A DNA stretch of 61,821 nucleotides, counting the filler, from Platydemus manokwari (taxonomy: Eukaryota), in the NCBI GenBank assembly GCA_037951405.1. It is 6 parts of 6 records of this genome, joined end to end, with 100 filler letters (N's around TTAATTAATTAA, not from the genome) between each part and the next. Parts side by side here need not be neighbours in the genome. Positions count along the whole stretch, not along the records: positions 38,700 to 51,354 come from JBBMOY010028902.1; 5 more parts are not named here. One strand, 5' to 3'. A model generated the notes under the pieces. It was not told the origin of the DNA and searched no databases. It worked only from the letters and a program-made list of their open reading frames with translations. The position numbers were made by a program, and so were the translations under genes. Below are positions 38,700 to 51,354 of the stretch, one piece after another; the first letter of the stretch is position 1; each line of letters begins with the position of its first letter.

Positions 38700-38792
38700 T
38701 AGATCTTTTTAAAAAATCTGCTTTATTTCCGATTTTTACAACATATTCATCAACAAAATATAATTATTGATTGTAGGATTTCGGTAATTTAG

Positions 38793-38987
38793 ATATTTGT
38801 CTTCATTTTAATATTGCCTGATTTGCTGAATGGATCATTTACAACAAAAGTTGATTGTGTTCGAAAATGTCCCGGACATACAAAATATTGTCGATTTCAT
38901 AATAATGGACATTGGTTAATTAATTCTTTTAATTGTAAAAAAAATTCTGATCCATGCATTAAGAAATGCAAACTTGACCCAAAATGA
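38793..38987 (+). CDS. Small secreted six-cysteine peptide (copy A+); coding exon, start codon not in this exon
   Basis: Open frame IFVFILILPDLLNGSFTTKVDCVRKCPGHTKYCRFHNNGHWLINSFNCKKNSDPCIKKCKLDPK*. It has a hydrophobic N-terminus, the same Cys frame as 43467-43655, a preceding tttag (likely acceptor) and AATAAA at 39001. Confidence 0.7.
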   Translation: MFVFILILPDLLNGSFTTKVDCVRKCPGHTKYCRFHNNGHWLINSFNCKKNSDPCIKKCKLDPK

Positions 38988-40051
38988 TTTGATGAACATT
39001 AATAAATCGATGACTTATCATTCTGTTATTTGATTATTAATTAGTTTATCGTCAGTTTATTTCAAATAATACATAATTATACAATTTCATATAAAATACT
39101 TTTAAAGATTTTTATAATAATTATTCAAATGAATAAAACATATTTTTGTGTTAAACAATCACATTAACCAGCAAATTTAAAATCAATATTTGAAATGTGT
39201 TTTAATATTATTTGAGTCATTCTTTGCAATAGTTTATTGTAAATTTCAAGAATATTTCTGGCAAACTTAAACAACTCGAAATATTTTATTTTCATTTCCA
39301 TCACGCTATGTTCATCTGATATTAATTTAAAGACATGTCCGATTTTAAGAAAATAATATATCCAATAAGAAAATACTTGAAATATAATAAAACTTATAAT
39401 TAAACAATGAATTTTGATTGAATTTTGTGTATTTGATATTATGTCGTAATCAATATAATAAATTTAGATATTTAAGCTCTATTTTTTTTCACACTGAAAT
39501 AACACTATCAAAATTCCTTGTTCCATTATTGATTAATTATAGAAATATTTTAAATTTAGACTTTTTTATGGGAAACGTAGTCTCAATTGGTCGTAGTAGT
39601 CTCAAAGTCTCAATTTATAAAAATTTTGAATTTAAAAATTCATATTTCTTACATAAAAATATTCGACAATCTTGCTTAAAATGGGAAATGAGTTCCATAT
39701 TGATTTATGAAACGTCTAAATTTTAAAATAAAACATACTTTCATCGATTTATTGTTTTGTATTCCACTGCGTTGCAAAAAATAAAGAATACATATTGATC
39801 TCTGGATAAACTCTTATTAGTCGTTAACGGAAGTACGTATTGAATTTCACTCTATATTTTCGAAAGTCACACACCATATGTGGTCCCAAGTAATTTATTT
39901 TATTTCCATGCATTTGATTTCTTCTTCATAAAATATTTTACAAGGTATCGATACCATAAATAAAACCATTCTTTACGTGATATAAAATCTATTGTATAGT
40001 GTAAATTAAAAACTAAATTTTATAAATCAAGTGAAATCGATTCTAATTTAT

Positions 40052-40218
40052 TTAGTTATCATTATTAGGTTTGCATTCAAATGTAATTAAAATATAAGCA
40101 TTGAAGTATATGTGCAGTATTTTGAAGCATTGGGACAAAGACGTCTGCATTCTTTCCTGGTATTCAGAGAACCGAGATAAATAAACACCATTGTAAATAT
40201 TATTAATATTTTTGACAT
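40052..40218 (-). pseudogene. Six-cysteine peptide pseudogene (copy A-), paralog of 43467-43655
   Basis: MSKILIIFTMVFIYLGSLNTRKECRRLCPNASKYCTYTSMLIF* has a premature TAA at 40087-40089, then a 1-nt deletion and loss of the segment encoding the last two Cys. Confidence 0.85.
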
Positions 40219-41589
40219 ATTCTAAAATAAATTATAATTACAATAAATTTTAACCAATTAGATATCCTCACTATATCTTCTTTATATCTTCTTTATATCT
40301 AATCTACATCTTTTTATATTCTTTACATATTCTCTATATACTATCACATCTTTCTACTTCTTTTCCTAAATTTATAGTCATCAGTCTTCTCAGAATCGAA
40401 TCCAGATGCGTAGTCACCATGTAAGCTGCTATTATTTTATAAAACAATACGCATCGAAAACGAATTGAAAAAACAAGACATTCAATTCTATTCAAATACA
40501 ATTATTTAAACAAAATAAATAAAATTTAAAATAAAATAAAATTCAACATCAAATAAATTCAATACAAATTCAATTTGATATCCTTACACCAGGCAAGAGA
40601 AGTAACCAGAAAATTAATTTCCCAATTTTAAGCAGAATATCCAGTACTCCTAGATTTCCAGGGACGGCCAAAACTTTGATGAACTGAGTGGATATAAAAG
40701 ATCTCAGAAATTACTTACGAGCGAAATTATATATATTTTAGATTTACTTAAAAATTCTAGAAGTTGTGTCAATTTGAAACAATAAAAAATTTCTTTAGTA
40801 CAAACTTTCAATAATTTAATCCAAATCAATAATAATTTGCTGCAAGATTCATATTTATGTCGAAGTTCTGATAAAAATTATTTAATAAATGTTAGAAATC
40901 ATTTGTAGATCATGATGAGAAATGTAAAATTTTTAATTTTAATTTTTACGATAAATTCTGAATAAATATTTAGAATATAAATGAAAAATTATTTAAGTCA
41001 AAATGACTAATATACCTTTATTACAACCTTCATACAGCACAAGCAAAACATGTCCTCCATTTTCAATCATACATAATTTTACCTCAAGTAATTCAATAGA
41101 AAATAGTGTTTTATATTGATTTATAATATTATAAATCAGTGCAAAATCATGACAGGAAAAGTAAGCGTTTAGTTTTATTTTTTTTTTAATTTTGATTGAA
41201 TATTAAAAATCTAAACTGAATAAAATGTGTGCTTTAAAAACTGATTAAAATAGTGCTTCTAAGTGGCGATTTTATCGATTACAATCAATTTATGAAAATA
41301 AATATAAATAATAATATGATTGTATATATTTTAAAAATTATTAAAATTGCTTTAAAAATATTATAAACATCGCCTATCCTCTTCTAATAAAATTTTATTC
41401 AAAGCATTTAAAGATATTCGGGGATGTATTCATATTAATTGGCTGATATTCGAAATTGCATGTTTTATCATTTTATTGGTTATTCAGTTTATTATAAATT
41501 GTTTCTGTAATTCTTTGTGTACCAAACTTTAAAATCATAATTAATTCATTCGATTATTGCTTCAAAATTTAATTAAAATGAAATTGATT

Positions 41590-41890
41590 TATTATTGAAA
41601 TATTTAAAAAGTAGAGTTTTTGATTGAAAACGTCCCAATTTATAAAATTTTGTCATAAAAAATGCATAAATAATATTCTCAACAATCTCGCTTATAATTG
41701 GAAATGAATTCCAAATTGATTTATAAAATGCTTAAGTTTAAATATTAGAAAGAAGTTCAGACTACTATAAACCTTTCTTAAAGCGAAATGCCTCTCAATT
41801 TATTGTAATAGTTCAGATTATATTATCCATTGCAAAGAGTACACCTTGAAATCACATGAAATATACACTTGAGTGTGTTGATATTTCTAG
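41590..41890 (+). repeat. Local repeat; inverted copy at 46650-46950 and partial copies in both peptide cassettes
   Basis: acaatctcgcttataattggaaatgaattccaaa...gaaatatacacttgagtgtgttgatatt matches the reverse complement of 46651-46950; the core also occurs at ~39600-39730 and ~43030-43170. Confidence 0.85.
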
Positions 41891-42445
41891 GAAAGAAATG
41901 TATGATAAATTTTTAAGTAGATTAATAAAAATAAAACTGTTTTTAAAAATTATTTTTTTATTTTACACCTGATTCTGTATTTCTTTAACCACGAATGATT
42001 ATCATGAGCAAATTACAAGTAGTATGTTATTATATTTAATAAAATCAATAACATTGTTCGATTTTATTAAGAAATAACAAATAAAAACTTGTAAAATAAT
42101 TTAATTTCAGGATAATCGGTCGACTGCACATTGACAAATATATTTATGAAATTTGATTTTTCATTTGATTTTTATAATATTGATTTAAGACAAAATAGCT
42201 AGAACAATAAAATAATGATAACTGATTTCGAGCCACTGGTATGAATATTAAACGATTGAGATCAATATCAAAGAAATGTGGGATATAAAATACGACATTT
42301 GTAAAACAATTGTTTAAATCTATTTATGAAATATTCAAAACATGCTATTCATGTTGAATCTTAAATCATATTATCGTTATTGGAAAGGAAGCTTTATTTC
42401 CGATTTTTATAATATATTCATCAACAAAATATAATTATTTATTGA

Positions 42446-42583
42446 ATGATTTCGGTAATTTAAATATTTGGCTTCATTTTAATATTGCCTGATTTGCTGA
42501 ATGGATCACGTCCTAAAGATTTTGATTGTGTTACACAATGACCCGATTACGAAAATTATTGTGGAAAAAGGGAAAGAGTATAA
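42446..42583 (+). pseudogene. Six-cysteine peptide pseudogene (copy B+), paralog of 38793-38987
   Basis: MISVI*IFGFILILPDLLNGSRPKDFDCVTQ*PDYENYCGKRERV*. The second Cys codon is TGT>TGA, the putative acceptor AG is AA, and the C-terminal half is missing. Confidence 0.85.
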
Positions 42584-43466
42584 ATATGAAATTTTGTACT
42601 CTACGCATTAACAAATTCTACATAAATTTACTTAAACTTAAACAACTCGAAATTTTTTTATTTTTATTTCGATAACGCTATATTCATCTCATATTAATTA
42701 AAGGACATGTCCGATTTTCAGAATATAATGTATCCAATAAGAATTTATTTGAAATATAATTAAAAATTATAATTAAACAATGAATTTCTATTGAATTTTG
42801 TTTATTAAAATGACGATATATGTATTTAAAATTATTGATTAGTATGAAATTATTGATTGATGAATGAAATGATTAAAGTAATTAATATTATGTCATAATC
42901 AATATACTTAATTCAGATATTGAAGCCTTATTTATTTCACACTGAAATACCAATTTTAACAAAATTATGTGTTCAATTATTGATTATTGATTAAATTATT
43001 TTAAATTAAGAGTTTTTATGGGATACACAAAGTCTTAATATATAAAAATATTGAATTAAAAAATTCAAATTTCTGACATAAAAGTATTCGACAATCTCGC
43101 TTATAATGGTGGAATGAGGTCCATATTGATTTATAATAATGCCAAATTTCAAAATACGAAAGAAGTCAGATGAAACATATTTTCAACGAATTATTGTTTT
43201 GTATAAAACTTTGATCTCTAGATAAACTCTTATTAGTCGTTAACGAAAGTACGTATTGAATTTCACTCTATATTTTCGATAGTCACACGCCATATGTGGT
43301 TCCAAGTAATTTATTTTATTTTCATTTGATTTCTTAATAAAATATTTTTTAATTTCAGGGTATCGATACAATGAATAAAACTTTTTTTTACGTGATATAA
43401 AATCTATTGTATATTGTAAGTTAAAAAATAAATTTTATAAATCAAGTGAAATTGATTCTAATTTAT

Positions 43467-43655
43467 TTAGTCATTACATTTGTTAAGGCATGTATCATTA
43501 TTAGGATTGCATCCAAAATGTAATGCAAAATTACGCATTGGAGTATATCCGCAGTATTTTGAAGCATTGGGACAAAGAATTCTGCAATCATTCTTGGTAT
43601 CCTGAGAACAAGAAATAATACACATCATAGTAAAAATTATCAATATTTTTGACAT
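43467..43655 (-). CDS. Small secreted six-cysteine peptide (copy B-), 62 aa, intact
   Basis: MSKILIIFTMMCIISCS|QDTKNDCRILCPNASKYCGYTPMRNFALHFGCNPNNDTCLNKCND*: signal-peptide-like N-terminus, mature C-x3-C-x6-C-x13-C-x6-C-x3-C, AATAAA overlapping the stop, and three paralogs nearby. Confidence 0.82.
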   Translation of the reverse strand: MSKILIIFTMMCIISCSQDTKNDCRILCPNASKYCGYTPMRNFALHFGCNPNNDTCLNKCND

Positions 43656-44529
43656 ATTCTAAAATAAATTATAATTACAATAAATTATGACTAATAAGAT
43701 GAAATAAGTGTTTTATTTGATTAAAATTTAAACAAATACTTATAAGCTTAAATCATCTCCTTAAATAATACACAGATGATATGTATCAATATGATTTATC
43801 GACTACTTTGGGTACATCATTTATAAGTTCGAGCAATAGACATTGTGAAATATGAAAATTCATTGTACTTCTAAAATCATCTCTTATGTTACCTTTACCT
43901 TCATAATGCAGATAATATCAAAATATATTAAAGAACAAGAGCATTCAATTTCATTAAGCTCGAATAATGACTAAAAGTTAATAATAAAGATATTCAATAA
44001 TGATCTAAACATATTTACGCCTACAATCCCGTAATTTGATTTAAAAATTCTAATTTCCCAGAATGAAAGTAAATAAGGAAGGCCTTATAATAGGTTCTAT
44101 TGAAACAATTAAGAATTTTAAAAGTCTTTGTTTTATAAAATTTATTGTTTTATTGATATTATTTGTGTTTGGTATCACTATGGTCCATTAATCGAAATGT
44201 GTTTTTTAAAAACCACAGATGTAATGAACCTTATGAAAAGGAATACTAAATAAATCAGAGCCTATTTAAAAAATATGATTATCGAATCTGCATCTTCTTT
44301 CGTGATTTCATTTAGTTTGTCAACATTAATAAAATTATAGTAGGTTCATTTAGATAAGAGACGTGTATAATTTCATTAAATTAAGAAGCCATGAATATAG
44401 AAGTACCTTGTTTTAAAAAACATTCGTGTATAAAGTTCAAAAATAAAATCATTGTTGAGGCATTGTGAGTTCAACCAAAATGGTCATGTAAGAGTTTAAG
44501 AAAATTGAACAAGGTCAAGATAACGCTGA

Positions 44530-45115
44530 GTTTAGAAAATGCCAGGGTATGGCCTTTAAGAACAAGAACAAAGTTAGCCCGACGAATCCCTGAGTTTTGA
44601 GAAGAAAAAGTCTTATCTTTTCACAAATTTTTATATCAATACGGTGTTTTGACCTGTATGGCTGATGGCACCAAAATGCCTCCACTATTAATCTTCAAAC
44701 GTAAAACCCTGTCTAAAGACAAAATCCCTCCTGGAGTATTGATTTATGTTCATTCAAAAGGATAGATGGACTAGCAAGGCATAGAATTATGGTTTGTTAA
44801 AGTACGGTCTAGTCGTCTTGGAAGCCTGTTGAAGAAGAAATCTCTTTTGGTTTTTGATCAGTATAGAGAGCATTTGACTAAAAATGTAAATAAAAAGCTA
44901 AAGAACTCAGAACTATTTATTCCAAGTGGTCTCACAAACCATTCGCAACATCTTGATATTATTATCAAATGAATTAGTGAATCTGACTTAATCTCTTGAA
45001 GAAGACGAAAACCTCGCAATTCTGGTAATTGGTGAAAGCTTCATGGTATCATCAAATCATTTAAGAAAACCGATATTTGTAATGACTTTGATGGCTCTGA
45101 GTATGATGTTTTCTT
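44530..45115 (+). mobile_element. pogo-family (DDE_1) transposase remnant
   Basis: LRTRTKLARRIP..EEKVLSFHKF; LTCMADGTKMPPLLIFKRKT; KG*MD; SLLVFDQYREH; IPSGLT..QHLD; IKSFKK..I.NDFDGSE; contains stops and deletions. Confidence 0.88.
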
Positions 45116-46649
45116 TCAAAAAAGGATTCAAAAAAGTATTCAGATGATGAGAAAATTGAATACTTAGCTACAAAACTGGTTAATCAACTTGGTGAAAATT
45201 TAAAAAAATTATTTTTTTTCATTTAATAAAGAAACTTTAAATTATCTAACTTTAAATAAAAATGATTTTGATACATTTTCTTATTAGATCTAAAGATAAA
45301 GATATGAATAATTCATTAAATTCAATGAAACAGTTTGCTGATATTCTTTCTGTTTTCTTTGTGTAAGTCAAAAGATTAAAGAGATTTTGTGCTAAGAGAT
45401 ACCATAATACAAAATTAACTGAGATAGTAAATCAATACACTATTTTTAAACCCTGAAGTAATACTCATGACATTTAAAATTAAATACAATCGCAAAGCGG
45501 ATAAAATATTTATTTTATATTTTTAAAGATTCTATTTTGTCATAATTCTAGTTGTTTTTTTAGACTATTTATTTATTTGAGAAAAGCAGTGCAGAGTATA
45601 TTTTAACGCTTATATGTATTTTATATTGATTTGATTGAATCAGTTTAACAAAGCATGCCCTGCATTTGCTAATAAAAAATATATTACAGAAAAAAAGATG
45701 GAGGGTAAATCGATTGTTTTCCTCAGATTATTTAAAATACATGTATTATAAATAATTGAAATATCAACATAGATTTCATGGATATCATTTAAAAAGTATT
45801 TACTTGGTTCAATCAATCAGTTTTTTTAAAATGTGCTAATCATAATAATCATAAATATGATAAAAATATTATTACAATGACGTAAAACCATTACAACTTA
45901 AAAACTTTCAAAATTTAAATTCTCACCTTCCCAATCATAATTTTAGTCTTGATATTGATTGGAACAACTAAATGAACAAAATCAATTTATCAACATGGTA
46001 TTATGTTATAGTGATTTACATATGCAAATTATAACGCAACTTGCACCGAGGAGATTATCATAAAACTAGGAAATTGTTAACAATCTTAAATTCCTTTTTT
46101 TAATATTATAATACCAATGACATTAATCAGATCCAATGTAAATAATATTACAGATGCGATAATGAAATATTTTTATTTAATACAACGGAATGACATTGGA
46201 AAATGTTTTATGTAGATTTTAGCAACATAAACGACAACGTTCACAATTTTCTTAACGTTAATCTATTGCTTTAATGAATATAAATATGATTTAGATTTTA
46301 TAACTTTATTTAGGATTTTGAATTTTTTTTATTACATAATTTATAATCAACCTGAACCATTTTATAAATAATATTATTTTGAATTAATTTTTGCTAAAAG
46401 ATATTTACAACAATATGTCAAAAAAACCATTTCACCCTGTTTATTTTGTTTTATTATTTATTATATTATTAAAGCATCCAACTTGCTAAATTTACGCATT
46501 TCTTTGAACATATCTTATCATTCACCTAAATGTCTGCTTGCAGAAAATGGTTAACAAATTCAATAACAAATAATTTTATCCAATGAAATATTTAAATAAA
46601 TAAAGTATTTTTTAAATCAAAAATACATTTAATAAAATTAAAAAAAATT

Positions 46650-46950
46650 AAATATCAACACACTCAAGTGTATATTTCATTTGGTTTCAGGGTGTACTCT
46701 CTGCAATTAATAATATAATCTGAAAATTTACAACATGTTTAGACGCATTTCGCTTTTAGAAAGGTTTATATTAGTCTGGACTTCTTTCTAATATTTAAAC
46801 TTAGGCATTTCATAAATCATTTTGGAATTCATTTCCAATTATAAGCGAGATTGTTGAAAATATTATTTATGCATTGTTTATTTCAAAATTTTATAAATTG
46901 GGACTTAACGTTTTCAATCAAAAACTCTATTTTTAAAATATTCCAATAAT
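46650..46950 (-). repeat. Inverted copy of the 41590-41890 repeat
   Basis: Direct reverse-complement match over ~300 bp. Confidence 0.85.
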
Positions 46951-47049
46951 TTATCAATATTGAAAAACGGGATTTTTTAAAATGTTTTATTTTTAAAAAA
47001 TTAACAATAAAAAAATTTATTTTGATCACTGTAAGACTCGTGATTTTTA

Positions 47050-47530
47050 TTTTGAATTCAGGGGGACTGTATCGACTTACCCAAATTTTTTCGATTGTTG
47101 AGACCACTGATTCTGCTGTGATGTCGGTAGAGGGATTCCCTTGGGCCAGGAGGTGTGTGTATCAATTAAAGTGAGAATAAATCGTATATTGTTACTTGAC
47201 GGAAGCTGTCCAACAATATCCAAGTGCATTACTCGGAATCTACCTCTATCACGTAATTGACCAAATTTAGATTTTGTATGCCTGATAATTTTTTGAGACT
47301 GGCATAGGTGACATTGTCAGGTCTACTCTCGAATTTCATCTCTCTTTCCGGGCCAAACTTATCGTGATGTATGTAAATCAATGGTTTTATTTGCTCAAAG
47401 GTTGGCAATTCCGTGCAGTCTTTTAAATTCCATCATGCGATAAGGAGGTGGAAGAATAATGCGCTCTGTTCCATTGAGGATATCCACATTTATTCCATTC
47501 CTGATCACTTTGGAATTGACTTGTGGGAAG
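47050..47530 (-). pseudogene. Ty3/gypsy integrase remnant (HHCC zinc finger and start of the rve core)
   Basis: RIILPPPYRMMEFKRLHGIA; SR*VWPGKRDEIRE*T*QCHLCQSQKIIRH; RFRVMHLDIVGQLPSS..RFILTLIDTHTSWP; DITAESVVSTIEKIWVSRYSPP. Confidence 0.85.
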
Positions 47531-47591
47531 GTTTTCAGTTGATCGATGGCCACCATCCTGGTGGTGGGTAATTTTCAGTCTGTTGGATTGT

Positions 47592-48146
47592 TCAAGTTGG
47601 AGATATTTGTGCTAATCTGTCAGCTATTTGACTTAGCTCTGTGGTAGGTTTGTCATCGTGTGCCACGAGGTGTTTTTGGATGTGAAATGGCATGCTTCCT
47701 ATAAACGCCGTTCGAAGAATATTGGAATTCACATCGACACCGTTTGGATCGATGGCTTTGTGATGTCTGAGAAGAATTTTTAGATGGTCTGATGGGCGTC
47801 GATCTCCGATGTTTTCCTTGGAGAAGAGTCGTTCGATGTGAACCGATGTCGGGATGCTCCTGCTGTTGATAATGGCCGATCGAATATCAGAGTAAGGAGT
47901 GGGTGATCCAGATCCAAGAATTTCGCGAAATTCTGAGAGGGTCTCGGAGGGAAGATTGGCAACAATGTGCAAGTATTTCGTTTCTTTTTTTGTGATCCCT
48001 GATATCCGGAAGATGGTGTCTGCTTGCTGGAACCAGATGTCGGGACAGTCAAAATACCGTGGAAATTTGACGGCTACATGGTTGCATTCTAGCAAACCGC
48101 TTCTGACACCAATGTAAGACTCGACATTTTTATCTAAGTTGGGCAT
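47592..48146 (-). mobile_element. Ty3/gypsy Gag-like ORF, 184 aa
   Basis: VKFPRYF.CPDIWFQQAD..F...GI.....KY, YSDIRSAII, IGDRRPSDHL and LRTAFIGSMP...ELSQIADRL match the VKLPPFW/GDRKPS/LA..AD gag pattern; integrase lies directly downstream. Confidence 0.85.
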
Positions 48147-49619
48147 AAAGACAGAAGACGAGATTTACACTTTGAAAGTAATTTTAAATTTTATTAACAT
48201 TTGATTTAAACAAATGTGATTTTTAATTAAATATAATTATTATTATATTTTACTGTTACAATTATTATTATCATTATTATTATTATTATTATTATCATTA
48301 TTATTTTATTGTTATTATTTTTACTCTTATGTGAAAAATGTATGATTATAACTACTGATCGACACGATAAACAAACACAAAAACCTGAGTAATGAATGAG
48401 AATTTATAACACCAGAAATTGGACCAATTCTGGTATATGAGCAGTGACCAAAACTAATTAAATCACCACATAGAAACATATCGAAAAATAACTCAAGAAT
48501 TAATTTTAAGTATTATTATCAAAAGTCCAAAGAAAATAAAAAAAGGTAAAATATTTTGTTATGTTTCGGATGTTTTGTTTATATACTGATTACCGAGCCA
48601 AAGTAAAATAACAGGTGATTGTTAAAAATACGGGTTGCATTTCCTGTTTACTTGTTATAATTATCCTACAACCACGGGTTGAATAGAAATAATATTCTCG
48701 ACACATTGTTGCTATGAGGGTATTATTCTTTTTATTATTCTCGGGATTATGGGTTGAATTTAAGATTCATTATTAATATTTTCAGTAGGCTATTAAATGC
48801 AGTGTTAATTATCATTAAGCCTATTTATTGGTAAACTAAAAATTTCATTAAATTACCATTAATTTAAATGGTAATGAAACTTATTATTAAAATTATTATT
48901 ATTATAGCCAGAATTATTATTATTTTCCACTTGGGCCTTTGTTAATCCCGTTTAAGGATTACTATTATTTAAACTTCAAGTTCAGAATTTGTTGCACATA
49001 AAAAATAAAGAATTAAATACATATAAATTAATATTTACGATTCCCCACAATCATTCATTACTGATATATACCCAATTAGTACTGATATACATTAAATCGT
49101 TGAAAAATTCATACAACAATTCATGCAAGGCAAATTTCGAGCCAATCACATGATTAAATATTAATTATTATTAATATATTTTTTTAAAAAAGTAGGACAT
49201 AAATTATAAAAATAACAATAACCGAAAAAATTAATGTGTTTAAATATATCAAAAATTACATTTATTTAGGTGCTTTAAAATATAGTCAATCATGTTCAAT
49301 ATGAACACTAACGTTCCAATTTTTTCAAATGATCATATTAAAAAATAATATGAACAGTTATTAACATAGCAATATCAAAGATTTCTCTAAAAATTATTTA
49401 TTAAACCTTTTTATCACAATTTTTATTTCTTTGACACATAATAAAGTCTTTTAATTTCAATGGTCTTCGTGCTTTTTCTCCTTGAATTTCTTCAATCGAA
49501 TCCTATATTTTGTTCAACTTATTAGGAATATTAGTTTGGGAGTATTTTTCAAGATTTTTTGCATATTCAAAGTCTAATCCTGTTATTACTGTATCTTCTT
49601 CACCTCTTCAACAAAATTA

Positions 49620-49940
49620 TCATTTGTTTCTTTTATCAACGTCTTTTTGGTGAACAGGTGCGTTGTCTAACAATAATGCAATTTTCCGATCCTCTGCTTT
49701 CATTGTATTGTTTAAATCTTTTAATCAATCGTGAAAAATTACCAACCAATTGTCACTCAAGATTTTGTATTCCAACGATAATAGGTAGGCAATTTTCCCA
49801 TATCAAAATTTCTCAAACTTCGATCGGCCTATCACTAAAGGCTTTTTAATATTTCTCCTAATATGTTTGCATCCAAGATAATAGTAATTAGACCTTTAGA
49901 AAACTTACCATTTGCCTTATCCTCTTTAGAAATTGCAAAT
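49620..49940 (-). mobile_element. Tigger-like (DDE_1) transposase remnant
   Basis: GKFSKGLITIILDAN, PLVIGRS, KLPTYYRWNTKS and LKDLNNTMKAEDRKIALLLDNAPVH, with frameshifts. Confidence 0.75.
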
Positions 49941-50449
49941 GTTCTGTTTAAGAAGCATTTCCAGAACAGTCAGTTAAAAATTAAATATTTTAACCAAATT
50001 TGTATAATTTATTGATTTATTTTGCATTATTTTTTGTTCACTGTTCAAAATAAACAATGTTCGTTTTATAAAACATAATTTTCTATGAAAATCATATGAT
50101 TTCCAATAAGTTTTGACTTAAATTTTCACATTAAACTGGGTCCATATTAAACAGGGCTTATATTGAATAGGGTTGACTATAATCAAATAGCTTGTCTGAC
50201 CTCAAGGTCAAAAAATTTTATCAGAAAATATTTTTAGTAAAATTATCAAATAAAGTTATAGGTTTTTACTAAATTTAGTACTGACATGTAAACATTGCTA
50301 AGAATAATAACAAATGTAGGCAAGTTACCTAATCATACATGCAAAGGACTCTAAACAGTTTATTAACATGAAGCAATAATCATTTACCGCATAATTTCAA
50401 CGATACACAATTTTGTCACTTAAGTTTGAACGTCTAATTTTATTCTATT

Positions 50450-51105
50450 TGCGATATCCATAGAAGAAGTATTCCCAACATGTATGTACAAATAATTTGA
50501 TTGATCCAGCAGATCATCTAAAATTGAATTTTATTATTTTTGAAATCGTTCCAGCATATCAATGGTGTGCAAAAATTTTAAATTGCGCCGGCATTTTTTT
50601 ACATAAGCTTTTCATGTCTTTTAAAGAAATCAATTTTCTTATTGATATGTTCAGGACGTTTGATGTTTAGATGTCGCTTGGGCTTCGCTGGCTTTAAACT
50701 ATCATTTACCAAATTATCGAAAAGAATTGCACCAATCATCTGCTGTTCATTATTAACCATGGTAAATGAAAACCACAAATTAATAAATGTATTGTACAAT
50801 TACTTATTTTTGGATCTTCTTTTTTTTGTAAATTTTTCACAGAGCTGCTCGCATTCTCAACTTGTAATCGCAGATCTGAAGCTTAAGAATTTCTTGCATC
50901 ACTTTTTATTAACCACTTATCCATTTTCCTGGGTATGAAATTTTCATAAATCTGCCTTCTTTCAATATTATTAAAACAACAGCAATGAAATAAAGAGTTT
51001 AATTCATACAATAAATTACTTTCAACAAACCAGAAATTATAACAACCAAATTTTATTTTAAAATTACAAATTTTAGACCCCCCCTAGTTTGCTCACCCCT
51101 ACAGT
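50450..51105 (-). mobile_element. Tc1/mariner-like remnant
   Basis: SLKPAKPKRHLNIKRPEHINKKIDFFKRH resembles the Tc1 GL.ARRP.KKP.L...H...RL.FA..H motif. The minus strand at ~51105 begins TACTGTAGGGGTGAGCAAA, which is TIR-like after a TA. Confidence 0.5.
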
Positions 51106-51354
51106 ACATGACCATGAGTAAATTTTTATTTGTTTAATTTAAATTACGAAACACAGCTAGTTTTAGCCTTGTGGTCTTCTAAAATCATATAAGCACAACG
51201 ACTGATTCTCCACTGTATTTTTATTCTTATCACAATAGAATTTGTATTTACCTTGAGTATTTTAAATTATCTTATTATTAATTGATTATATTTTATTGTA
51301 TTGACTTATTTTGTTTCGATTATTTATATTTTAAATATTATTTATTATTATAAT

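Follow-up and report, generated by a model that had tools for sequence, protein, structure and literature searches.

In the window (the whole stretch of DNA that was analysed, 61,821 nucleotides) a cassette of ~1.5 kb has been duplicated in tandem, and each copy of the cassette carries one convergent pair of small peptide genes. The second copy, cassette B, lies 3.4–3.7 kb downstream of the first, cassette A, in the same orientation. Around the plus-strand gene the alignment of the two is gap-free, with the copies offset by 3671 nt. The upstream end of cassette A is possibly cut at the edge of its sequence piece, at 38700. The four genes are paralogous. In cassette A the plus-strand gene (A+) is intact and the minus-strand gene (A-) broken; in cassette B it is the other way round, with B- intact and B+ broken. 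The features are as follows.

38720–40263, no strand assigned: cassette A, duplicated unit with a convergent peptide gene pair (direct-repeat families D1–D15 and alignment to cassette B)
38793–38987, plus strand: A+, intact terminal coding exon (translation and paralogy to B-)
39506–39760, no strand assigned: copy of a ~300-nt dispersed repeat within cassette A
40052–40218, minus strand: A-, broken copy of the minus-strand peptide gene
42284–42352, plus strand: TATAAAA box (42284–42290) and candidate 9-codon first exon of B+ (42326–42352), as inferred from reading the sequence
42391–43700, no strand assigned: cassette B, second copy of the unit (repeats and alignment)
42464–42583, plus strand: B+, broken copy of A+ (cassette alignment)
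43467–43655, minus strand: B-, intact single-ORF gene of 62 aa

Further copies of the dispersed repeat lie at 42957–43204, 41561–41886 and 46650–46976 (inverted). The DNA is very GC-poor and animal-like (GC 22–24%), and its standard stop codons, together with metazoan-type pogo and retroelement remnants, speak against a ciliate or Dictyostelium origin, which was rejected. Rfam gave no non-coding RNA match over the piece, and a word search with a 184-aa gag-like ORF gave no relatives. Neither this ORF nor B- had an exact protein match.

The A+ exon opens directly after an acceptor-like ...tttag and closes with TGA, with AATAAA at 39001–39006. An in-frame stop lies directly upstream, and the first exon falls outside the piece. 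The exon codes for the 3' part of a predicted signal peptide and for a mature peptide of ~50 aa with six cysteines and a net charge of about +8. The segment that was labelled a signal sequence in the preliminary description covers only the 3' part of the signal, on an exon that has no ATG of its own. Three lesions break B+: an in-frame stop, a substitution at a splice site, and a large deletion or replacement that has taken away the 3' portion of the exon. Its candidate first exon runs up to a GT and matches the phase of the exon at 42464. A- carries two indels, of which one shifts the frame, and its reading frame comes to an early end after 43 codons. Both broken genes were read only as they stand, with their breaks unmended, and the stop in B+ is shown as an asterisk. 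B- begins with an N-terminal signal-like segment followed by a six-cysteine mature part (C-x3-C-x6-C-x13-C-x6-C-x3-C), and its poly(A) signal overlaps its stop.

The framework of the family is C-x3-C-x6-C-x13/15-C-x6-C-x3-C, the central loop being longer in A+ (15 residues) than in B- (13). Between A+ and B- all six cysteines align (31% identity, E=2e-8) and the loops vary. The first three cysteines of A- also match the framework in the alignment, and B+ as it stands is without the full set. The signals of the plus and minus genes are unlike each other, 25–27 of 45 nt being different. Judging from their sequences, the peptides would be secreted and would hold three disulfides. AlphaFold2 reached a pLDDT of 60 with the family alignment and 49 with the mature A+ peptide, and the models are unusable.

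Word-based searches with B- and with A+ returned no relatives, and an exhaustive profile search of 1.84 billion protein representatives returned no credible one. The sole match of the profile search was a 676-aa repeat protein, which was judged spurious. A sequence search of the PDB found no relative (best E=0.099), Pfam (E up to 1) and NCBIfam gave no family match, and metagenome scans with the conserved signal DNA and with the protein alignment gave no match. Peptide words of the family were found neither in the papers searched nor in the supplementary files of the genome study on Aphidius and Lysiphlebus. By these comparisons, the peptides form an orphan family without detectable relatives in the collections searched.

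The divergence between A+ and B+ is very unevenly placed. In the signal part (38793–38837) the two copies differ at 1 of 45 nt, whereas in the mature stretch that follows (38838–38894) they differ at 20 of 57 (35.1%), and the jump sits at the predicted signal/mature junction. A recount thus returned the same figures as the preliminary description. Its statement that every changed codon alters the residue is likewise borne out, as 13 of the 19 codons in the stretch are changed and all 13 changes are replacements, with the D-C-V, P and Y-C codons kept. The flanks had seemed more alike than the mature stretch, and they are: in strictly non-coding DNA common to both cassettes 103 of 847 nt differ (12.2%), and at this rate the binomial probability of at least 20 mismatches in 57 nt is 6.6e-6. 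The intron-like upstream flank (38720–38792) differs at 6 of 73 nt, and all other aligned cassette DNA outside the compared stretches at 132 of 1059. No other 57-nt segment of the cassette is as diverged as the mature stretch; non-coding segments of this length have at most 15 mismatches (mean 7.1, sd 3.0). Directly after it the homology between A and B stops, B+ being without the rest of the exon, and a non-homologous block follows that measures 368 nt in A and 68 nt in B. The A-only and B-only blocks have no match elsewhere in the piece. With the coding parts of both gene pairs pooled, 49 of 269 nt differ (18.2%), more than in the non-coding DNA (P=0.014).

Base composition reduces this contrast. 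In the non-coding DNA, 33.5% of G/C sites differ versus 4.9% of A/T sites if a site counts as G/C when either copy has G/C, and 23.9% versus 8.8% if sites are classed by copy A alone. The composition correction uses the either-copy classing, in which G/C sites differ ~7 times as often as A/T sites. Since the mature stretch is richer in G/C (33.3% in A+, 35.1% in B+) than the non-coding cassette DNA (22%), its expectation rises from 7 to 10 mismatches, and the 20 seen still exceed the corrected 10.2 (P=7e-4). The single mismatch in the signal part is unexceptional without correction, 5.2% of non-coding 45-nt segments being equally conserved, and it falls below the corrected expectation of 6.2 (P=0.007). 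The contrast of the mature stretch, which was picked post hoc, is real, and after correction it is about two-fold rather than three-fold.

Selection is not demonstrated by these changes, because dN/dS in the mature stretch of the plus pair is 1.6 on 18 codons (Nd 16/42.7, Sd 3/11.3; Fisher P=0.73). The pN of 0.375 exceeds the flank divergence (Fisher P=5e-5), and the pS of 0.265 also lies above the flank value of 0.12, not significantly (P=0.15). The minus pair is without the contrast of the plus pair and has the reverse tendency, with 13 of 60 nt different in the signal and 15 of 107 in the mature part; conservation of the signal beyond the corrected expectation is found in the plus pair and not in the minus pair. 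In the mature part of A- and B-, dN/dS reaches 5.9, from 23 codons in which synonymous change amounts to just 0.5; for either pair, sites and copies are too few. Polarising by the minus genes assigns six changes to A+ and nine to B+ (15 assignable), so the intact A+ has moved as well. Over the 19 codons, 13 residues separate B+ from A+, more than the 10 that separate A+ from its distant paralog B-, and residues common to A+, A- and B- are lost in B+. Such losses look more like a framework coming apart than like diversification that kept to it. The preliminary description had proposed that B+ diversified under selection before it was inactivated. The excess over the flanks, almost wholly of replacements, bears out the pattern behind this proposal; the dN/dS value, the lost framework residues, the end of homology right behind the stretch and the minus pair do not bear out the proposal itself.

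The best explanation, to which we give about an even chance, is cassette duplication, reciprocal loss, fast and probably adaptive turnover of the mature peptide, and then decay of B+. A 1.5-kb cassette with two convergent genes for small, putatively secreted, disulfide-rich peptides was duplicated in tandem, and after the duplication (~12% non-coding divergence) one member of each pair would have been lost reciprocally, A- in one case and B+ in the other. The stretch that codes for the first third of the mature plus peptide has changed ~2–3 times faster than the adjoining non-coding DNA, nearly always by replacement, with the signal-coding part held under constraint. The exposed mature peptide may have gone through a fast, probably adaptive turnover of the kind that marks secreted families of toxin, effector and antimicrobial-like peptides, and B+ would have decayed after its mature peptide had changed. 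The sequences themselves show the duplication, the paralogy of the four copies, the excess over the flanks and the broken state of two copies; we infer both selection as the cause and this order of events. Venom, effector and antimicrobial peptides already provide cases of fast change in the mature part, and the pattern is documented for the SSSGP genes of the Hessian fly (PMC2955719) and for venom peptides of Aphidius ervi (PMC4035087). For now the locus, with its 19 codons, is an unremarkable case of an evolutionary pattern that is well known.

A mosaic history is possible, if somewhat unlikely. The mature stretch of B+ and its flanks would then differ in age, either because gene conversion homogenised flanks, intron and signal of the two cassettes and spared the stretch, or because the stretch was overwritten from a third, more diverged paralog elsewhere in the genome. 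The synonymous divergence of the stretch fits such an older or foreign origin as well, the stretch adjoins the non-homologous block, and concerted homogenisation has been proposed for a like pattern in the SSSGP genes of the Hessian fly (PMC2955719). The rest of the cassette, however, is fairly uniform (dispersion test, P=0.06), and the 37-nt run of identity in the signal is exceeded by a perfect run of 45 nt elsewhere in the cassette. This argues against a separate conversion tract limited to the signal, which the preliminary description had named as another source of the contrast. No third paralog was found within the piece or in the collections searched, and a boundary at the signal/mature junction is not what the mosaic model predicts. 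With no more than two copies to compare, such a history and rapid adaptive change cannot be told apart.

A process without selection, in which a cluster of mutations came with the truncating rearrangement of B+ and G/C sites decayed faster under AT-biased mutation, is quite unlikely. The higher rate of change at G/C sites and the G/C-richness of the stretch are in keeping with it, as are the even spread of the changes over the codon positions (9, 5 and 6), the loss of framework residues in B+ and the deletion or replacement next to the stretch. Yet the excess survives the composition correction, B+ is no AT-richer than A+, the lineage of the intact A+ accounts for about 6 of the 15 assignable changes, and the frame is retained together with the conserved codons. 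Very improbable is an ordinary fluctuation, for although the stretch is short (57 nt only) and was selected by eye, and divergence along the cassette is somewhat uneven (2 to 13 mismatches per 50-nt bin), the corrected P multiplied by ~20 independent windows is still ~0.01–0.02, and no non-coding segment exceeds 15 of 57.

Several known systems resemble the duplicated genes in part. In Aphidius ervi, three venom toxin-like peptides, which are knottin-like, measure 27–36 aa (PMC4035087). As in these and in conotoxin-type peptides, the plus pair joins a conserved signal to a mature peptide that diverges strongly, and the framework of the family has six conserved cysteines. The peptides described here differ in their length (~43–50 aa in the mature part), in the symmetric, non-knottin spacing of their cysteines and in the dissimilarity of the plus and minus signals, and Pfam and sequence searches gave no match to any toxin family. 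With defensins (CS-alpha-beta and beta-defensins) they share small size, secretion and three presumed disulfides, and A+ is strongly cationic. Membership was rejected, the cysteine spacing having no CXC or CC element (patterns in PMC9604261 Table 3) and Pfam finding no defensin domain. The toxin- or defensin-type signature read from this locus in the preliminary description holds as a pattern at the signal/mature junction; no sequence kinship with conotoxins or defensins was found.

The BCR3 peptides of aphids are bacteriocyte-specific, cysteine-rich and built on the motif CX3CX6CX21-25CX6CX3C (PMC9604261 Table 3; PMC3574423). Six cysteines with identical outer spacing are common to both, as are small size, secretion and an orphan, lineage-restricted occurrence, and some BCR genes are clustered. 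Membership was rejected here as well, because the central loop has 13–15 residues versus 21–25 in BCR3, outside the consensus motif. Nor was kinship accepted: no similarity of loop residues to the published BCR3 sequences was seen by eye, the BCR3 loops being hydrophobic and Gly/Ala-rich versus polar or basic here. The profile search of 1.84 billion proteins gave no BCR-like match.

The SSSGP genes of the Hessian fly (Mayetiola destructor) encode small secreted peptides, lie in tandem or inverted clusters and show an 'unusual conservation', the DNA for the mature peptide being less conserved than promoter, UTRs, intron and the part that codes for the signal; positive selection and homogenisation were proposed as its cause (PMC2955719). 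Tentatively, and with more doubt than assent, the four copies could be read as a new lineage-restricted family of six-cysteine secreted peptides in one of the most GC-poor animal genomes, with coding DNA that changes faster than introns and flanks. A GC content of 22–24% is reported only for aphid-parasitoid wasps such as Lysiphlebus and Aphidius, which gives no more than a lead. Under this reading the four copies would be a second, independent case of Hessian-fly-type 'unusual conservation' and possibly peptides of host manipulation (venom or teratocyte) or immunity. If the pattern holds over more paralogs, an unrelated peptide family would join the few cases in which non-coding DNA is better conserved than mature-coding DNA, and two cassettes with reciprocal loss would make a compact system for separating selection from homogenisation. 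The locus also draws attention to small, easily missed genes for secreted peptides that are absent from standard annotation and protein databases. The locus differs from the SSSGP genes in having no more than two copies, of which one is broken, and in a milder contrast (65% mature identity, still alignable) that the second gene pair does not show; it also has a fixed six-cysteine framework. Likened by pattern alone, the two systems share clustered small secreted genes, an intron (putative here) tied to the signal-coding region and, as the 12.2% versus 35.1% divergence shows here, non-coding DNA that is more conserved than the DNA coding for the mature peptide.

Two direct copies of a ~1.5-kb unit, cassettes A and B, lie in the piece at 38700-51354 of the window, and each carries two convergent small peptide genes, one per strand (A+ and B+ on the plus strand, A- and B- on the minus strand). 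No copy beyond these four was found elsewhere in the piece. B+ and A- are read as they stand, with no mended, joined or consensus version.

38720-40263: cassette A, direct copy of ~1.5 kb, from the cassette alignment
38793-38987, plus strand: A+, intact; last part of a hydrophobic signal, then a strongly basic six-Cys peptide of ~50 residues
40052-40218, minus strand: A-, broken by two indels, one of them frameshifting
42391-43700: cassette B, direct copy of ~1.5 kb, from the cassette alignment
42326-42352, plus strand: candidate first exon of B+, proposed from the sequence alone
42464-42583, plus strand: B+, broken by an in-frame stop, a splice-site substitution and a large deletion or replacement that takes away the 3' part of the exon
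43467-43655, minus strand: B-, intact; 62 aa, typical N-terminal signal-like segment, six Cys

The fates of the genes are reciprocal: in cassette A the plus gene is intact and the minus gene broken, and in cassette B the reverse, so that exactly one working copy of each gene type remains. The plus-strand gene appears as a terminal exon without its own ATG, with an acceptor-like ...tttag directly 5' and an in-frame stop just upstream; A+ ends in TGA, with AATAAA 14 nt downstream. On the minus strand the gene consists of one ORF. A perfect 45-nt identity (40205-40249/43642-43686), ending in an acceptor-like ...tttag, lies directly upstream of its ATG, and cassette homology stops ~50 nt upstream of that ATG. 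An intron and a non-coding leader exon may thus precede the coding part of the minus genes, whose promoters may lie outside the duplication. The best-kept long block (39795-39909/43211-43325, 95% over 115 nt), downstream of the minus genes, is non-coding, comparatively G/C-rich and without a match in Rfam.

The two plus-strand genes differ very unevenly. Strictly non-coding DNA shared by the cassettes differs at 103 of 847 sites (12.2%) and the upstream intron-like flank at 6/73. The signal part (15 codons) differs at 1/45, and the mature stretch, the next 19 codons, at 20/57. The preliminary description had counted these last two exactly, and it was also right that all changed codons alter the residue (13/13 replacements, with D-C-V, P and Y-C kept). 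No other 57-nt window in the whole cassette is as diverged as the mature stretch (P=6.6e-6); non-coding windows have a mean of 7.1 and a maximum of 15 mismatches. The raw signal count is ordinary: 5.2% of non-coding 45-nt windows are equally conserved, and the run upstream of the minus-gene ATG is a longer perfect one. G/C-carrying sites in the non-coding cassette alignment (38720-40263 vs 42391-43700) differ at three to seven times the rate of A/T sites (33.5% vs 4.9%, or 23.9% vs 8.8% when sites are classed by copy A alone), which indicates strongly AT-biased mutation. The exon is richer in G/C than its flanks, and raw exon-versus-flank comparisons thus exaggerate its excess. After composition correction, 10.2 differences are expected in the mature stretch and 20 observed (P=7e-4), bearing out the earlier remark that the flanks are more alike; for the signal part 6.2 are expected and 1 observed (P=0.007). 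Both the mature excess and the signal conservation survive, at about two-fold.

The minus genes lack such a contrast (signal 13/60, mature 15/107, the latter as the flanks predict), so a conserved signal next to a divergent mature region is seen in A+/B+ and not in A-/B-. Pooled over both pairs, coding DNA is more diverged than non-coding (49/269 vs 103/847, P=0.014). B+ may, as had also been proposed, have diversified under selection before its inactivation. The excess over the flanks agrees with this, but over 18 codons of the mature stretch pN is 0.375 and pS 0.265, a ratio (1.6) no different from 1 (P=0.73). Against the flank rate, pN is significantly higher (P=5e-5) and pS higher but not significantly so (P=0.15). 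At the nucleotide level A+ and B+ (20/57) are closer than plus and minus genes (28-34/57), whereas 13 of 19 residues differ between A+ and B+ and only 10 of 19 between A+ and B-; residues common to the three other copies are lost in B+. With the minus genes as outgroup, six changes fall on A+, nine on B+ and five are unassignable, a rough polarisation because this outgroup is near saturation. It suggests that the intact copy A+ changed too.

Only two copies and 19 codons are available, so the explanations are inseparable. The one we favour, at about an even chance, is duplication of a cassette with genes of a fast-evolving secreted-peptide family, in which the mature part of the plus gene would change faster than neutral DNA, its signal would stay constrained and B+ would decay later. 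It is favoured because the switch falls at the predicted signal/mature junction and changes occur on the intact lineage. A mosaic history, with homogenised flanks or a B+ stretch derived from another paralog, is less likely but the main competitor. Directly after the mature stretch, homology gives way to 368 nt in A (remaining exon and 3' flank) and 68 nt in B, two blocks with no similarity to one another or to the rest of the piece; this adjoining block and the raised pS fit a mosaic, but divergence is fairly uniform across the rest of the cassette and no donor paralog was found in the piece or the collections searched. A mutational or neutral origin of the changes is rather improbable, given the excess left after composition correction and a B+ no more AT-rich than A+. 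Chance is very improbable.

The surroundings look like intergenic animal DNA, with G+C of 21-26% over most of the piece and islands of up to 42% at transposon remnants.

~44400-45200, plus strand: pogo/Tigger-like DDE_1 remnant, weak (E=0.0045, below the Pfam cut-off)
47592-48146, minus strand: gag-like ORF, Pfam DUF7041 (E=3.5e-13), intact, 184 aa
~49400-50900, minus strand: further DDE-like remnant, faint DDE_3 match only
41561-41886, 46650-46976, 39506-39760 and 42957-43204: four copies of a ~300-nt dispersed MITE/SINE-like repeat

Both DDE-transposase remnants are decayed by many stops and frameshifts. The G+C-rich island at 47022-48146 (minus strand, up to 42%), a gag-like ORF followed by three short ORF fragments, looks like an LTR-type retroelement remnant with most of the pol region absent; a word search with the 184-aa ORF gave no relatives. 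Repeat copies 41561-41886 and 46650-46976 are inverted, 91% identical, and flank a 4.8-kb segment with cassette B and the pogo-like remnant; the in-cassette copies are older (~70% identical to these). Simple repeats (48230-48310, 48880-48930, 40262-40335) comprise (ATT)n-type microsatellites and, just past the end of cassette A, a few imperfect 'ctttatat'-like units in a short run.

As paralogs, A+ and B- share 31% identity (E=2e-8) and align at all six Cys in the framework C-x3-C-x6-C-x15/13-C-x6-C-x3-C; net charges of ~+8 and ~+1 make them strongly different in surface character. From sequence features we infer that the genes code for small secreted peptides, which probably have three disulfides. 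Pfam and NCBIfam gave no family match for these peptides, and two word searches, PDB sequences and two metagenome scans no relative; among 1.84 billion representatives a profile search matched only a repeat protein, judged spurious. The family is thus an orphan as far as these searches reach. AlphaFold models were too low in confidence for use (pLDDT 60 and 49).

At 22-24%, the G+C here equals the lowest reported among insects, 23.8% in Lysiphlebus fabarum and 25.8% in Aphidius ervi, both aphid parasitoids (PMC7257214), as a lead only; peptide words were not found in the supplements of that paper. The Cys spacings do not fit defensins. The aphid bacteriocyte-specific cysteine-rich subfamily BCR3 has the motif CX3CX6CX21-25CX6CX3C (PMC9604261, Table 3), identical to A+/B- in outer spacing, but its central loop has 21-25 residues against 13-15 here, and comparison by eye with the BCR3 sequences of the supplement showed no loop similarity; membership is unsupported. 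The pattern of conserved signal and diverged mature region is already established elsewhere. The signal is highly conserved among the three venom toxin-like peptides of A. ervi, which share six Cys but diverge in their mature parts (PMC4035087). The tandem and inverted clusters of SSSGP secreted-peptide genes in the Hessian fly (Mayetiola destructor) combine super-diversified mature-coding regions with a conserved promoter, UTRs, intron and signal-coding region, which is attributed to positive selection and homogenisation (PMC2955719).
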